Source: Octopus sinensis
Taxonomy: Eukaryota
NCBI RefSeq assembly: GCF_006345805.1
Contig: NC_042998.1
Coordinates: 16,926,001 to 16,990,000 of the forward strand
Direction: 5' to 3'
DNA length: 64,000 bases
Shown here piece after piece: positions 9,272 to 54,886 of the stretch. The translations under genes and the position numbers were made by a program. Under the pieces are notes generated by a model. The model searched no databases. It saw nothing but the letters and a program-made list of their open reading frames with translations, and had not been told where the DNA came from. The first letter of the stretch is position 1. Each line of letters starts with the position of its first letter.

Positions 9272-9344
<73 letters not shown>

Positions 9345-9719
9345 TGATGGCTTTTTGACAAAATAATGCGGCAGTCCAAGGAAAGGGGAGAATGTTACTG
9401 TCATGTAGACCCAAGAAACATCGTTTCTAGTTGACTATGCGACACAAGCGTTCTGTGTCCTTAGGTTATCATATATGGGGAGATAACCTCCTCCACCAAT
9501 CAAGCCAGCACTTATAAACTAGTTTAAGGGTTATTGCACTTCATCAGTCTAGCCTTGCTAGATGTTTCTGCCAATCTGTTGTTAAAAACTTAAAGAATTT
9601 CAAGTGAAATACATTCACTGAACAACAGAAATAGAAATATTACAGTTCTAAATCTCTCAGAGATAAAAAAAAAAACATATATATAATATCAGAGAATAAA
9701 TTTATATATCAAAGAATGC

Positions 9720-49288: not shown

Positions 49289-50196
49289 GGATTGAGCATC
49301 GACATCAAGAAGACTCACTTGCTCTACCAACCTCCTCCCAATGCCTGTGTTGACAACCCGCCATCGATTCGACTCGAAGGAATTCCACTGGAAAATGTGA
49401 ACCATTTCTGTTACCTTGGGAGCCATCTGTCAGCAAAGTAGACCTCAGCAATGAAATCTAACACCGTCTGAAGTGTTCAGGAACAGCTTTCGGCAAGTTT
49501 CGAACAAGAGTTTTTGCTGATCGGGACATCCGAACCGAAACCAGACTCATGGTGTACAGGGCAGTCATTATTCCAAACCTCCTTTACGCATCCGAAACCT
49601 GGACCCCGTATAGTCACGACCTCAAAGCGCTCGAGAAATTTCACAAACGCTGTCTTCGGAAGATCCTTAACATCAGCTGGGAAGACAAAAGAACAAACGT
49701 CAGTGTGCTACAAGAAGCAAAAATGACCAGCATCGAAGCCTATGTCATCAAAGGCCAACTAAGATGGAGCGGTCACGTGGTTAGAATGACTGACGAACGA
49801 CTTCCCAAACAGATCTTCTACTCCCAACTCAAAGACGGCAAGCGTACAAAAGGAGGCCAGAAGAAACGCTACAAGGACTCCCTGAAAACGAACCTCAAAA
49901 AGTGTGACATCGACTTCATTAACTGGGAGGAAACGGCAAAAAACAGACCACTCTGGAAAACCACCATCCATGAGGGAACGGCGACTTTCGAGTCGAAAAG
50001 GTCTGCAGAGCTGGAGGAGAAAAGACGACGACGGAAGGAGCGCCAACAACAACCACGTGTGACTTTCCCATCCGGCACTAGATGTCCGCACTGCGACCGA
50101 TCTTTTCAAGCAAGAATTGGTCTTATCGGTCACCCACGGACTCACCAGTAAATTTGCGCGAAGACAATCACCCTCGACCTTGAGGGATTGCCATCA
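49289..50196 (+). mobile_element. 5'-truncated RTE-clade (BovB-like) LINE with a C-terminal C2H2 finger
   Basis: [21 protein letters not shown]; MVYRAVIIPNLLYASETW..FHKRCLRKILNISWED..LRWSGHVVRM..RLPKQIFYSQL..GGQKKRYKD; CPHCDRSFQARIGLIGHPRTH. Short 3' UTR with a CCCTCGACCTTGAGGG stem-loop; flanked by (TA)n. Confidence 0.95.
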
Positions 50197-50285
50197 TATA
50201 TATATATATGTGATGATGACAAACGCCTTCATATGTATATATATATATATATATGAGACAAACACCCCCGGCTGCCGGAACTTCA

Positions 50286-50331
50286 TCTAGGAACACCGTG
50301 TTTCAGGATCGTTGTCCTTCATCGGCCTAGA
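50286..50331 (-). ncRNA. Minimal type I hammerhead-like ribozyme (inverted copy, GUU triplet)
   Basis: Minus: TCTAGG-CCGATGA-AGGA(CAACGA)TCCT-GAAA-CACGGTG-TT^CCTAGA. Confidence 0.7.
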
Positions 50332-50522
50332 GTAGCAGACAACGGTCAGCCGGTGATATTTGCCTCGACTTCGTAATTGTATATATTTATATTCAGTGAA
50401 GTTTATTCACTGATTATCAAAAGAGAGATTTAGAAATTCAATATTTCTTATTTTGATAATCAATGAATAAACTTCACTGAATATAGATATATACAATTAC
50501 GAAGTCGAGGCAAATATCACCA

Positions 50523-52304
50523 CCCTCTTTTTTTTTGGTTATTCTGGTGTGTTTATTTCGAGTTGGAGTTATTCTGGTGTGTTTGTTTCGAGTGCGTCAT
50601 TGTGAAGAGGTTGTGAGTTCGAGTTCGTTGGAGGACGTGCAAAAGTTTTTTTTTCTTTGGAGATTCTTGAAAATGCAAGAGCAGACTTATGCGAGAGCAG
50701 CAGGCAGAGGCCTGGTTGCCAGTGAACTGGAAATGGAAGAAGTGGTGGTCGAACAGAAAACTCTAGAGAAGTATTTCGACAGTTTAAAGAGGGAGGGTGA
50801 CTGCGTGAGAGTCACACCGTCCGAGGAGGAAGAAAGCAACGCGGAGAAGCGTATGATAACGTACAGGACATGGTGTGTGGCGTCGAAAAAAGTTGAAGTA
50901 GCAGAAACGGAAGAAGTAGAAAAGTGTCTGAAGGAAATTGAGGGTGAACCCACATTTTTCAAGAGAGGAAGGAAATATGCCACAGTGGTAGTATATTTTT
51001 AAACAGAAAATGAAGCAAAAAAGAATGCAACAAGAATTTTGAAAACGGATAAGTGGACTTTACTACCAAGTTACTGCGGAAGGAGGGCAGTGAGGATGAG
51101 AATTAGCAGAATTTCGCCCGAATTTAATATGGAGAGGTTGTTGGCGGCAGTGGTTTTCAACTGCAAGGATAGTGTGGAGGTGTTGAAGGTGGAGAAGTCA
51201 ACAGAGGTTAAGTGGTGGGGATATACGGTGCAGGTTCTGGCACATATAACCGTGCGAGACCTGTACAACATCCCGGAGGAGTTGGTCTACCCTGATGAGA
51301 CACGGCTTAGAGTCGTGGTAGAGGGAAGACTCCCAGTCTGCTATAATTATAAAGTGAGGGGCCACATGAAGGATGTGTGCCCGCTGGAGAAGACGAAGGC
51401 ACCGGAGGCTGTAATAGAGGAGTGTAAAGATGCGTGTGTGGAGGAGGGAGAAGTGCAGGAGGAAGCGAAAGCAGAGGAGGCACAAACGGAGGAGCAGCTA
51501 AATGAGGATACGGAAGAAGAACGAGCAAGTGCAGAGGAGGAAAGAACAGAAGATAGGAAGAGAACAAGGGTGGAATCACCACCGAAAGTTCTAAAAAAGA
51601 AAAAAATCAAAAGCAAGATAACAGAAGAAAAAGAAGAGAGAACACGCAAAGAACAGGAAGTAAAAGAGAAGGCGAGAGAGCAGCCAAGGACAGAGTTTGA
51701 CCAAGAATGGGAGACAAGAGTGAAAGAGCAGTTGGAAGCGTGTAAAAAGGGAAGAAGGCCTGCAGGAAAAAACCTGAAAGTAGTTGTGATGTATATCAAG
51801 AATACAGAAGTGGAAAAGAGACTTGCAGGTAGGAAAGGGTTGGTCAGGGTGAAGTTGAACCCAAAACTGTATGGTGACGATGTAAAAGGCGCAGTTATAG
51901 AAAAAAACATTCACAAAATTAAAAAAGATATTTAATGCTATTTATATAACGCATTATGTACGGTATGACAATTTACCAAATGTAATAGACCAAATGGACT
52001 TAATAGAATATATGACGGACGAACGTCCAATATAAAAGAATTAGAATATATGTAATGTTAAAAAGTAAAATTGTTAATTGTAAAATTGTAAAATGTAAAA
52101 TTGTATTTTGAACTGGAATATATGTAATTGTGAAATGTACAATTGTATTTTAAACGGAACTGCGAGTTGGGGGTTCGTAAGCCGTTCCATCTCATTATAT
52201 ATAATTCATCTTTATTTCATATTTTATTTTTACTTTATGTACCCCACGTCCCGTCTTGTAATGTCCCGTCTGAATTAGGGCCATCGTGCCCATAATAAAG
52301 ATAT
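50523..52304 (+). mobile_element. ORF1-only (RT-less) L1/Tx1-like retroelement, unit 1
   Basis: ~150-nt 5' UTR, single long ORF, ~250-nt 3' UTR ending GGGCCATCGTGCCCATAATAAAGATAT. Bounded by AATATCACCA (50513-50522 and 52305-52314). Confidence 0.75.
50673..52055 (+). pseudogene. ORF1p-like CCHC zinc-knuckle protein, copy 1 (in-frame TAA at 51000-51002; frameshift near 51900)
   Basis: Track ORFs 50535-51002 and 51039-51935 are in the same frame. MQEQTYARAA...RMRISRISPE...IPEELVYPDETRLRVVVEGRLPVCYNYKVRGHMKDVCP, followed by an E/K-rich region. Confidence 0.8.
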
Positions 52305-52321
52305 AATATCACCAGCCGACC

Positions 52322-54059
52322 TATTTTTTGGTGGGAGTCGTTATTCTGGTGTGTTTGTTTTGAGTGCGTCATTGTGAAGAGGTTGTGAGTTCGAGTTCGT
52401 TGCTGGAGGACGTGGTGAATTTTATTTGGAGATTTTGAAAATGCAAGACCAGACGTATGCGAGAGCAGCAGGCAGAGGCCTGGTTGCCAGTGAACTAGAA
52501 ATGGAAGAAGTGGTAGTCGAGAAGAAGACTTTAGAAAAATATTTCGACAGTTTGAAGAGGGAGGGTGACTGCGTGAGAGTCACACCGTCCGAAGAAGAAG
52601 AAAACAACGCGGAGAAACGTATGATAACATACAGGACATGGCGTGTGGCGTCAAGAAAAATAGAAGTAGCAGAGACGGAAGAAATAGAGAAATGTCTTCA
52701 AGGAATTGAGGGTGAACCTACCTTTTTCAACAGAGGAAGAAAGTATGCCACAGTGGTGGTACACTTTAAAAATGAAAATGAAGCAAGAATGAATGCAACA
52801 AAAATTCTGAAATCTGAAAGGTGGACTTTATTACCTAGTTACTGCGGAAAGAGGGCAGTCAGAATAAGAATTAGTAGGATTTCGCCCGAACTTAACATGG
52901 AGAGGATATTAGCGGCAGTAGTTTTCAACTGCGAGGAAAGTGTGGAGGTGGTGAAGGTGGAAGAGTCAACAGAAGTTAAGTGTTGGGGATATGCGGTACA
53001 GGTTCTGGCACATATAACCGTGCCAGACCTATACAACATCCCGGAGGAGTTGGTCTTCCCTGATGAGACACGGCTTAAAGTCGTGGTAGAGGGATGACCT
53101 CCAGTTTCTTATAATTGCAAATTAAGAGGCCACATGAAGGATGTGTGCCCGCTGGAGAAAACGATAACACCGCAGGCTGTAACGAAGGAGTGGAAAGATA
53201 CCTGTGTGGAGGAGGGGGAAGTGCAGGAGGAAACGAAAGCAGTGGAGAGGCAAACGAAGGAGCAGCTAATTGAGGATGTGGAAGAAGAACGTGCAAGTGC
53301 AGAGGATGAAAGAACAGAATATAGGAAGAGAACAAGGGTGGAATCACCACCGAATGTTCTAAAAAAGAAAGAAATCAAAAGCAAGATAACAGAAGAAAAA
53401 GAAGAGAGAACGTGCAAAGAAAAGGACGAACAGACAAAGACAGAGGTAAACCTAGAATGGAGAAAAAAAGTGAGAGAACAGTTGGATGCTTGTAAAAAGG
53501 GAAAAAGACCTGTAGGAAAATACCTGAAAGTATTCGTGTTGTACGTGAAAGACACAGAAGTGGAAAAAAGACTTGCAGGTAGGAAAGGATTGATTAGGGT
53601 TAAATTACACCCAAAACTGCATGATGACGATGTGAAAGGGGTAGTTGTAGATAAAGGAACATTTACTGAATTGAAAAGTATGTTTGATCAGGTTTATTTA
53701 ACGTATTATGTATGTTATGACAATTTGCCAAATGTGATAGACCAGATGGAATTAACAAAGTACATTACGGACGAACGTCCAACAGAACTGGAATTTATGT
53801 AATTGTAAAATTGTAACATTGTAAATTGTAAAATGTAAAATTGTATTTTGAACTGGAATATATGTAATTGTAAAATTGTAAAATGTAAAATTGTATTTTA
53901 AACGGAATTGCGAGTTGGGGGGGTTCGTAAGCCGTTCCATCTAACTCATTACACATAATCCATCTTTATTTCATATTTTATTTTTTACTTTATGTACCCC
54001 ATGTCCCGTCTTGTAATGTCCCCTCTGCATTCGGGCCATCGTGCCCATAATAAAGATAT
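52322..54059 (+). mobile_element. ORF1-only (RT-less) L1/Tx1-like retroelement, unit 2
   Basis: Colinear, diverged paralogue of unit 1 (ATG-to-ATG period 1768 bp) with the same 3' end. Bounded by AATATCACCAGCCGACC (52305-52321) and AATATCACCAGCTGACC (54060-54076). Confidence 0.75.
52441..53802 (+). pseudogene. ORF1p-like CCHC zinc-knuckle protein, copy 2 (453 codons; single in-frame TGA at 53095-53097)
   Basis: Track ORFs 52426-53097 and 53134-53802 are in the same frame. The TGA aligns with AGA in copy 1. Knuckle SYNCKLRGHMKDVC at 53107-53148. Confidence 0.82.
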
Positions 54060-54088
54060 AATATCACCAGCTGACCGGTGTCTGCTAC

Positions 54089-54134
54089 TCTAGGCCGATG
54101 AAGGACAACGATCCTGAAACACGGTGTCCCTAGA
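54089..54134 (+). ncRNA. Minimal type I hammerhead-like ribozyme (U4C core variant, GUC triplet, predicted cut after 54128)
   Basis: TCTAGG-CCGATGA-AGGA(CAACGA)TCCT-GAAA-CACGGTG-TC^CCTAGA: 6-bp stem I, 4-bp stem II, near-palindromic ACAC-G-GTGT stem III. Confidence 0.72.
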
Positions 54135-54411
54135 TGCAGTTCCGGCAGCCGGGGGTGTTTGTCTCCCCTTCGTATATGTATACAAGGACACAGGGAAAAA
54201 ATGTGTCAAAGCTATCAGTAGGCGTTCGATGCTTCCTAGGGCTATACAGCGGTGGTGTACCCCCTACTGTCACGTTCTTGTTAGATTGACAGTATACACC
54301 CATTCTATCGCCCCACCACCATACATGTCTCTACGAGAGATTTAGAAATTCAATATTTCTTATTATATATATATATATATATATGTATATATGTTCATAC
54401 ACATATATATA

Positions 54412-54527
<116 letters not shown>

Positions 54528-54618
54528 ATCAATATAGCGTAGCAAAAAATTCAATAGAAATTTTTCGCCACCAGCGATCCAGTGAGAAAGAGTAAATAGT
54601 CGCAGACTATATATATAT

Positions 54619-54833
54619 AAATTCAACAATATAAGGAATGACCCTGGTAGGCCATTCGTCTCATTAGAAAGAGCAGCCATACTCAAACCGCTAAATAGTA
54701 GTAATTCAGAAATTAAAGGTAAATCTTTTTGATTTACCTTTAATTTCTGAATTACTACTATTTAGCGGTTTGAGTATGGCTGCTCTTTCTAGTGAGACGA
54801 ATGGCCTACCAGGGTTATTCCTTTATATTGTTG

Positions 54834-54837
<4 letters not shown>
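54619..54837. repeat. Foldback palindrome, ~107-bp arms, 5-nt T loop
   Basis: 54619-54725 versus 54731-54837: 2 substitutions and 1 indel. Flanked by (TA)n. Confidence 0.95.

Positions 54838-54886
<49 letters not shown>

Follow-up and report, generated by a model that had tools for sequence, protein, structure and literature searches.

Long interspersed nuclear elements (LINEs) reduced to their first open reading frame (ORF1) have been described in mammals and in Drosophila. The mammalian element, HAL1, keeps a 5′ untranslated region (UTR), ORF1 and a 3′ UTR, has lost ORF2, and needs the ORF2 protein (ORF2p) of a related LINE. HeT-A, found at Drosophila telomeres, is a Gag/ORF1-only LINE whose reverse transcriptase (RT) is supplied in trans; it uses one kind of site, lies head to tail, and has a selected ORF. 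We analysed a 64,000-nt stretch of the Octopus sinensis genome (assembly GCF_006345805.1, contig NC_042998.1, positions 16,926,001 to 16,990,000 of the forward strand), hereafter the window, in which two tandem units (units 1 and 2) interrupt a hammerhead-derived repeat. The units are dead copies of a non-autonomous retrotransposon family. This family probably descends from an octopod LINE of the L1 superfamily (L1/Tx1-type), of which it keeps the 5′ UTR, ORF1, and 3′ UTR and has no ORF2.

The layout, and with it the need for a related ORF2p, would be shared with HAL1. However, HAL1 derives from mammalian L1, encodes an ORF1 protein (ORF1p) made of a coiled coil, an RNA recognition motif (RRM), and a C-terminal domain, and inserts without sequence specificity, whereas the octopus units come from a cephalopod, encode an ORF1p with two RRMs and a CCHC zinc knuckle, lack poly(A), carry a 3′ hairpin, and have a defined target. 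Because the named homologues are all octopod and the ORF1p architecture differs, the units are, judged from their sequence, an analogue of HAL1 and not a member of it. HeT-A belongs to the jockey clade, is added to chromosome ends without an endonuclease target or target-site duplication (TSD), and serves a host function. The octopus units are like it in being ORF1-only, site-specific, and tandem, and unlike it in using internal targets, with TSDs of 10–19 nt inside another repeat.

Insertion at a fixed site in another repeat or a microsatellite, often by several elements in tandem, is a habit of the Tx1 group. Tx1L in Tx1D of Xenopus is the founding case; it and Keno, Mutsu, Kibi, and Koshi are autonomous L1-superfamily LINEs of the apurinic/apyrimidinic endonuclease (APE) type with RRM and CCHC modules in their ORF1p. 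Octopus relatives of the units resemble this group in lying in an (ATT)n tract (locus L002), in a short interspersed nuclear element (SINE; L012), or in a tandem array (L003), the octopus RT being likened at the level of the L1 superfamily; Tx1-group elements are autonomous, whereas the window units are ORF1-only. We know of no hammerhead repeat reported as the target of a Tx1-type LINE. The existence of sequence-specific Tx1 elements is documented (PMC5753468). The literature searched held no mollusc ORF1-only lineage of this type with ORF1 selected across a deep clade, nor any hammerhead or retrozyme-like repeat reported as the target of such elements. R2, a site-specific LINE, and some other LINEs carry their own ribozyme, similar to that of hepatitis delta virus, at the 5′ end, where it could process a co-transcript; in the octopus case the ribozyme is part of the target and is found on the 3′ side of the insert, with ~69 nt from the unit end to the predicted cleavage site.

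The initial annotation of this DNA had called the arrangement an undescribed "parasite of a parasite". That was overstated, since Tx1L in Tx1D and HeT-A precede it, and the locus joins known themes (HAL1, HeT-A, Tx1L in Tx1D) rather than forming a new kind of system. What it adds is a further case of ORF1-only LINE parasitism, beside HAL1 of mammals and HeT-A of Drosophila: a cephalopod lineage of L1/Tx1 type in which purifying selection has kept ORF1 although the element encodes no RT. The octopus would offer a natural system for the role of ORF1p in cis when ORF2p is supplied in trans, and the choice of target ties APE-type LINEs to another retroelement class, the Penelope-dependent ribozyme repeats.

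The two units and the copies of their target site are as follows.
50344–50360, minus strand: empty target site AATATCACCGGCTGACC in the inverted host arm, found by the 17-mer search and the in silico empty-site alignment.
50513–50522, plus strand: 10-nt TSD AATATCACCA upstream of unit 1, equal to the first 10 nt of the 17-mer.
50523–52304, plus strand: unit 1, an ORF1-only LINE derivative (5′ UTR 50523–50672 with a duplicated 30-mer, ORF 50673–51935, 3′ UTR 51936–52304).
52305–52321, plus strand: 17-nt target copy AATATCACCAGCCGACC between the units, from the 17-mer search.
52322–54059, plus strand: unit 2, an ORF1-only LINE derivative (5′ UTR 52322–52440, ORF 52441–53802, 3′ UTR 53803–54059).
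54060–54076, plus strand: 17-nt target copy AATATCACCAGCTGACC downstream of unit 2, from the 17-mer search.

The units are colinear end to end and 85% identical (1758 aligned nt). The frame of unit 1 runs from an ATG at 50673 to a TAA at 51933–51935 (420 codons) with an internal in-frame TAA at 51000–51002, and its early end results from a 2-nt indel near 51897. That of unit 2 runs from an ATG at 52441 to a TAA at 53800–53802 (453 codons) and contains an in-frame TGA at 53095–53097. A different cysteine of the zinc knuckle has been lost in each copy (CxxY in unit 1, 51339–51380; SxxC in unit 2, 53107–53148), and the ancestral knuckle was therefore CX2CX4HX4C. The 3′ UTRs (~260–370 nt) hold (TTGTAAAAT)-like short repeats and end alike in ...GGGCCATCGTGCCCATAATAAAGATAT; neither unit has a poly(A) tail, the 3′ tail being AAUAAAGAUAU. 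The 5′ ends are unlike, since unit 1 has its own leader and a duplicated 30-mer. Neither window ORF matched an RT, endonuclease, or transposase domain in Pfam, and tblastn with a related ORF2 found no ORF2-like sequence in the 64-kb window. The features that the initial annotation had described here were all recovered at the same coordinates: two units, each with a 5′ UTR, one long ORF, and a 3′ UTR; no RT, endonuclease, or transposase; and a protein with TYARAA, IPEEL...VVVEG, a knuckle (damaged in both copies), and an E/K-rich tail. The same was true of the junction repeats of 10, 17, and 17 nt and the surviving empty site.

The 17-mer AATATCACCRGCYGACC occurred exactly three times in 64 kb, with a chance expectation of 0.03. 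Read 5′ to 3′, the copies of AATATCACCAGCYGACC around the units measure 10, 17, and 17 nt. After excising both units in silico, together with the two surplus copies of the target, we compared the result with the reverse complement of 50255–50437. The left flank (to 50512), joined to 54060 onward, aligned without gaps to the inverted arm, with six mismatches in ~166 nt of host (96% identity). The TSDs and the restored empty site indicate insertion into a pre-existing sequence whose other copy stayed uninterrupted. Both window units have the same 3′ junction (...AAAGATAT joined to AATATCACC) and therefore used one bottom-strand nick. On the top strand the nick site reads ...GAGGCA^AATATC..., with a second nick 10 or 17 nt downstream giving rise to the TSDs.

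Between the two ORFs, the synonymous divergence (dS) was 0.37 and the nonsynonymous divergence (dN) 0.093, for a dN/dS of 0.25 (bootstrap 0.18–0.35; one pair only). Pseudogenes produced by local duplication drift toward a dN/dS of 1, so that most of the 15% divergence must have arisen in active lineages with a selected ORF1. Taken together with the TSDs and the restored empty site, this makes the units separate insertions of diverged family members. An alternative is that only one insertion took place and was then copied at the locus (unequal crossing-over on the 17-mer is one possible route), after which both copies decayed neutrally; this would suit two adjacent units in the same orientation exactly one target copy apart. 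However, a dN/dS of 0.25 at a dS of 0.37 is unlike two pseudogenes decaying in situ, the units are 15% apart while the host arms are 4% apart, the 5′ ends differ (unit 1 with its 30-mer duplication and own leader), and the upstream repeat is 10 nt long, not 17. We regard duplication in place as very improbable. The comparison thus argues that the units were inserted independently rather than duplicated locally, and that purifying selection acted on ORF1 as their two source lineages grew apart.

Homologues of the ORF were collected with a query built from an alignment of two stop-free window pieces, the profile covering the N-terminal 246 positions. An exhaustive profile search yielded 367 representative homologues, 103 of them below 1e-10, and all named homologues were octopod (Octopus bimaculoides, O. 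sinensis, O. vulgaris, and Argonauta hians). Word-indexed protein searches with the whole ORF and with the N-terminal alignment gave no matches; the E/K tail probably swamped the whole-ORF search. The exact products of homologues P0037 and P0007 and of the 222-aa window ORF were absent from database records. Features of the family are an N-terminal (T/S)YAxAA, two RNP-like modules, the string IPExL...VVVEGRxPxCxxCxxxGHxxxxC, a charged low-complexity linker, and a conserved C-terminal block RVKL...LKxxFxxDVG.

Structure prediction, a check proposed by the initial annotation, gave a confident tandem-RRM model: AlphaFold folded residues 1–218 of unit 2 into two beta-alpha-beta-beta-alpha-beta modules with a predicted local distance difference test score of 90.5. 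The best 50 Foldseek matches in the PDB were nearly all RRM proteins, mostly tandem ones (Prp24, raver1, SFPQ/NONO, UP1, HuC), at modest E-values of ~1e-3. The family profile matched the CCHC knuckles of ZCCHC8 and of retroviral nucleocapsid in the PDB. Pfam zf-CCHC matched the relatives P0002 and P0037, the latter at 18.5 bits, below the 20.8-bit cut-off, and gave no match in the window ORFs, each of which has lost one cysteine. The window ORF is a LINE ORF1p in which two RRM folds precede a CCHC knuckle, and a charged linker leads from there to a conserved C-terminal domain. LINE ORF1p with RRM and CCHC modules is reportedly the "type I" ORF1p of Khazina and Weichenrieder. The ORF1p identity that had been read from the bare sequence was borne out by the two RRM folds, the knuckle at family level, and the ORF1–ORF2 layout of relatives.

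The ORFs could instead be tandemly duplicated genes of the host, or ORF1 genes domesticated in the manner of L1TD1 or ZCCHC3; a dN/dS below 1 and the annotation of several database homologues as ordinary proteins would fit. Yet each copy has an in-frame stop and a broken knuckle, both copies are inside a repeat, the UTRs are LINE-type and accompanied by a LINE 3′ hairpin and TSDs, and there are hundreds of divergent family members, some of which are fused to gene models unrelated to them. We find a domesticated gene scarcely credible and treat the ORFs as LINE ORF1 copies. The annotated homologues were labelled "uncharacterized" or "CCHC-type domain" proteins, and some were fused into host gene models. 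By eye, ORF1 was joined to unrelated domains in P0013, P0051, and P0080, the partners being cysteine repeats of the low-density lipoprotein (LDL)-receptor type, cysteine-rich repeats next to a metalloprotease-like domain, or a long C-terminal region of unrelated sequence; these gene predictions are therefore contaminated by the repeat.

Autonomous relatives encode a homologous ORF1 followed by ORF2. In L003 (O. vulgaris OX597840.1), ORF1 is followed, with a short overlap of the two frames, by an intact 1132-aa ORF2 with the Pfam domains Exo_endo_phos, RVT_1, and zf-RVT. Residues 3–868 of this ORF2 had human L1 ORF2p as the best PDB match (2e-71), with R2 proteins at 1e-24. In positions 1–13026 of L003, three or more LINE copies are arrayed head to tail at intervals of 5278 nt, and the L003 family may still be active because ORF1 and ORF2 are both intact in the first copy. 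The ORF1+ORF2 layout was also present in L002 of O. sinensis (decayed and flanked by (ATT)n on both sides) and in L013 of Argonauta hians (16-nt TSD). A search for ORF2 homologues returned no clade-informative names and did not distinguish Tx1 from L1. Octopus repeat surveys list "L1-Tx1" families, as a RepeatMasker class only (PMC13282606, PMC8967140). Loci L004 and L011 were uninformative, one consisting of fragments only and the other having an assembly gap right after ORF1. Between the tandem L003 LINEs, the stretch CTGATAAGG...CGAAAC was considered as a hammerhead and rejected, as its helix II is unpaired and the stretch varies between tandem copies.

The lack of ORF2 recurred across loci. 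Pfam and tblastn found no APE or RT in the units, nor over a distance of 5 kb in L001, L010, and L012, and ORF1 leads through a short 3′ UTR to the element end in L001 and L010 of O. vulgaris as well as in L012 of O. sinensis. ORF2 was absent from all five ORF1-only units, which come from four loci and represent at least two Octopus species. Units 1 and 2 have the same arrangement from the ORF1 stop to the 3′ UTR, and their divergence therefore came after ORF2 loss. One major group of the ORF1 tree (B) contains the window units, L001, and L010, and its members with known architecture are all ORF1-only. The three autonomous elements are in the other group, as is ORF1-only L012, beside the L003 clade (93/92 support). 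Since L012 nests in the ORF1 group of the autonomous elements, ORF2 was probably lost at least twice on this tree. A repeated origin would be another likeness to HAL1, which arose several times according to a passage of PMC5753468 that cites Bao and Jurka 2010. The HAL1-like family of the initial annotation was upheld in that ORF2 is absent and ORF1p kept, but the matching autonomous partner was not found.

The placement of L012 beside autonomous L003, with ORF2 lost more than once, would also be expected if no self-propagating ORF1-only family existed and each copy were a one-off product of deletion or template switching at insertion. LINE copies with internal deletions are common. In that case, however, units 1 and 2 would hardly show the same arrangement while being 15% diverged with a selected ORF, L001 and L010 would not be expected to repeat this architecture, and ORF2 would not be absent at every group-B locus looked at. 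One-off deletion is improbable on these grounds, and a propagating ORF1-only family accounts better for the locus.

At the 3′ terminus the units have a motif in common with autonomous LINEs.
52278–52304, plus strand: 3′-terminal hairpin of unit 1, GGGC-CATCGT-GCCC, with its ATAATAAAGATAT tail, based on covariation in seven elements including autonomous ones.
54033–54046, plus strand: hairpin of unit 2, within its 3′ UTR.
The last ~45 nt were homologous across all elements (GTCCCCTCT...hairpin...AATAAAGA). The 4-bp hairpin lies just before the A-rich tail; its arms are GGGC/GCCC (window), AGGC/GCCU (L001), GCC/GGC (L002), and (G)CCC/GGG(U) (L003). Its cells were paired in 93% of cases, against 18–50% in slid controls, with compensatory changes in three of the four pairs. 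The terminal hairpin and AATAAAGA covary with autonomous L002, L003, and L013; a closely matching partner 3′ UTR was not found. The hairpin is a putative RT-recognition element that would let ORF1-only RNAs use ORF2p in trans. A metagenome scan with the 3′-end pattern returned four chance matches, on bacterial contigs.

The repeat that hosts the units has the following parts in the window.
50255–50343, minus strand: segment H of the inverted host arm, 96% identical to the reverse complement of 54060–54165, with a match to covariance model R1 at 50278–50338.
50361–50512, no strand assigned: palindromic centre of the host dimer, with reverse-complemented P, C (50423–50452), and direct P, ending GAGGCA.
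54077–54165, plus strand: host segment H, type-I hammerhead-like, read by hand from the sequence.
54166–54364, plus strand: remaining host monomer, with M at 54166–54334 and the terminal C at 54335–54364, followed by (TA)n.
9340–9665, minus strand: solo uninterrupted host copy of a third subfamily, in the order C-P-H-M, flanked by (TC)n(TA)n.

Compared with L010 and other copies, the host monomer is ~366 nt long, abuts (TA)n, and has the order C-P-T-H-M-C, with C of 30 nt (GAGAGATTTAGAAATTCAATATTTCTTATT), P of ~60, T (the target) of 17, H (the hammerhead) of ~89, M of ~170, and C again. The window monomer consists of 50423–50522 and 54060–54364, and an inverted P-T-H copy (50255–50422) is joined to it at C. 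The palindrome at 50352–50521 is 91% complementary, and its C segment is repeated exactly at 54335–54364. The remaining part of the monomer (M and terminal C) has its homologue in the host sequence that precedes the unit in L010 of O. vulgaris, with 97% identity over 141 nt (L010 2004–2144), and L010 also holds an inverted dimer of M-C fragments, 97% identical to those of the window. The host proposed by the initial annotation is thus present but larger than claimed, running to 54364, with the palindrome lying within the ~366-nt monomer.

Penelope-like elements (PLEs) and their pseudo-long terminal repeats (pLTRs) are marked by variable 5′ truncation, inverted partial copies, a preference for (TA)n, and hammerheads (PMC8557442), and animal retrozymes have been proposed to be non-autonomous PLE derivatives (10.64898/2026.07.22.740005; PMC7229834). 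As the truncation, inverted copies, (TA)n flanks, and hammerhead of the host match these hallmarks, it is probably a retrozyme-like repeat mobilised by PLEs. Like animal retrozymes and pLTRs, it is a few hundred nt long, has a type-I hammerhead with a very short helix III (palindromic ACUAGU in O. vulgaris), and shows terminal redundancy, inverted truncated copies, and association with (TA)n (PMC7229834, PMC8557442, 10.64898/2026.07.22.740005). It differs in that no long tandem arrays were seen in the DNA examined, the core is mutated in three of five copies, and Rfam gave no match. No PLE RT linked to the host repeat was found. Immediately left of the host, between (TA)n tracts, lies a 5′-truncated LINE of another family (~49290–50190, plus strand; ORF 49549–50151), of which the C-terminal region of the RT ends in a C2H2 finger (...CPHCDRSFQARIGLIGHPRTHQ).

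In the window hammerhead, helix I is UCUAGG/CCUAGA (54089–54094/54129–54134), helix II AGGA/UCCU (54102–54105/54112–54115), and helix III ACA/UGU (54119–54121/54125–54127). The core CCGAUGA is at 54095–54101 and GAAA at 54116–54119, GUC is in place, and cleavage is predicted after C54128. Core substitutions occurred in three of five host copies: the L010 core is canonical (CUGAAGA...GAAAC...GUC), that of L001 reads UUGAUAA, and the solo copy at 9340–9665 has CUGAUGA and lacks G12 and C17. Helix III of L001 and L010 is 2 bp long, and its sequence ACUAGU is a palindrome. Such a short palindromic helix III has been described for the hammerheads of retrozymes and PLEs that act as dimers. Pair cells were standard in 94% of cases against 24–44% after sliding, with compensatory changes at four pairs (four host copies, two of them near-identical). 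The hammerhead is enclosed in a stem formed by the 17-nt target and the sequence that directly follows the hammerhead on its 3′ side. The host family is hammerhead-derived on this evidence, cleavage by the window copies being a prediction only.

A covariance model of the host hammerhead, run over 186 kb, recovered the five training copies and one weak unrelated match. The weak match (L002 16909–16962, minus strand, E 0.0014) lies in an unrelated repeat and reads GUGAUG-UUGAUAA-GCCA...UGGU-GAAAU...CAUCAC. The only Rfam matches were spurious microRNAs on (TA)n and hairpins.

The target recurred at other loci. In L001, whose ORF1p is 30% identical to that of the window, the unit is bracketed by the 15-nt repeat TGCTGGGTTCGKCTA and followed by sequence homologous to the window host (CTACTCTA...GAUAA...CUGAAAC...GUC...UAGAUG). 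L010 belongs to the L001 subfamily and has the same 5′ junction, ending ...GCTACTC; the 3′ part of its unit and the adjacent host segment are deleted. All nicks at the hammerhead target fall within ~25 nt preceding and entering helix I, in a sample of four insertion events at three loci, all reached via ORF1 homology. L012 (O. sinensis CM016880.1, 4461–6047) is ORF1-only, belongs to the other ORF1 clade, and lies in a tRNA-type SINE with a ~19-nt TSD (CAGAAAYGTTAGCACGCCG). Because the group-B units lie in the hammerhead zone and L012 lies in a SINE, the family appears, within this small sample, to behave like target-specific L1/Tx1-type LINEs whose subfamilies use different repeats. At all three loci, which were selected through ORF1, the insert occupied one arm only of an inverted host dimer (window 50255–54364, L001 7626–9722, L010 4520–6780).

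Apparent specificity could also reflect co-inheritance, with the unit and the hammerhead repeat forming one composite that is moved as a block by a Penelope-like RT. In favour of this, the unit lies inside an inverted host dimer in (TA)n at all three group-B loci, as in PLE-style insertion, and the unit and host subfamilies diverged in parallel (window versus L001/L010). However, the uninterrupted site is kept in the other arm of the window dimer, solo and fragmentary host copies occur without a unit, and the short direct repeats bracket the unit and not the composite. Nor would a composite explain two selection-diverged units in one host copy, a 3′ hairpin common to APE/RT LINEs outside this host, or a related ORF1-only unit in a SINE. 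Block movement is improbable, and site-specific insertion into the host remains our preferred reading.

In the proposed mechanism, a donor ORF2p would recognise the conserved 3′ hairpin and the AAUAAAGA tail, and the donor endonuclease would be specific for the stretch just 5′ of the hammerhead. Several points weigh against descent from an L1/Tx1-type LINE followed by target-specific movement in trans. This reading has to suppose that the ORF1-only RNA is bound in cis by its own ORF1p and that it is reverse transcribed in trans by the ORF2p of an autonomous relative. All three autonomous elements lie outside the ORF1 clade of the units, and the assignment of L002, L003, and L013 as L1-superfamily LINEs holds to that level of affinity. 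We found no autonomous LINE that shares more than the terminal ~45 nt with the units or that lies at the hammerhead target; the partner sharing the last ~100 nt, for which the initial annotation had suggested searching, did not appear, only the terminal ~45-nt motif being common. The nicks of the window subfamily and of the L001/L010 subfamily are ~12 nt apart when aligned on the host, and the sample is small and biased to occupied sites through ORF1-based selection. As for the hammerhead proposed initially, its three helices covary, but both window arms read CCGAUGA...GAAAC...GUC, which fits 10 of 11 core positions with U4C as the exception, and Rfam gave no hammerhead at the gathering score or at E ≤ 10, either for the region or for slices of 131–181 nt.

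A further idea is that the link to the hammerhead is functional. The old ORF2-less group-B clade would be co-transcribed with the host retrozyme or read into it, and the ribozyme ~69 nt past the unit end would trim the transcript. The 3′ tail left by trimming would come from the host and be the complement of further copies of it, and it would thereby steer target-primed reverse transcription to the same site again. If true, three parties would depend on one another: a donor of L1/Tx1-type ORF2, a rider with ORF1 only, and a ribozyme repeat of the Penelope type. We consider this functional link, in which the rider would use the ribozyme, unlikely.

Two minor observations concern the surroundings. 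Positions 50453–50472 of the window match L003 5734–5753 at 19 of 20 nt (TTTTGAKAATCAATGAATAA) in opposite orientation; the match lies in the palindromic host centre on the one side and where the 5′ UTR of the L003 LINE begins on the other, and may be due to chance in AT-rich sequence. Positions 54608–54848 contain an inverted repeat of 118 nt, whose arms are 91% complementary and stand 5 nt apart; it resembles the hairpin of a miniature inverted-repeat transposable element and drew spurious plant-microRNA matches from Rfam.

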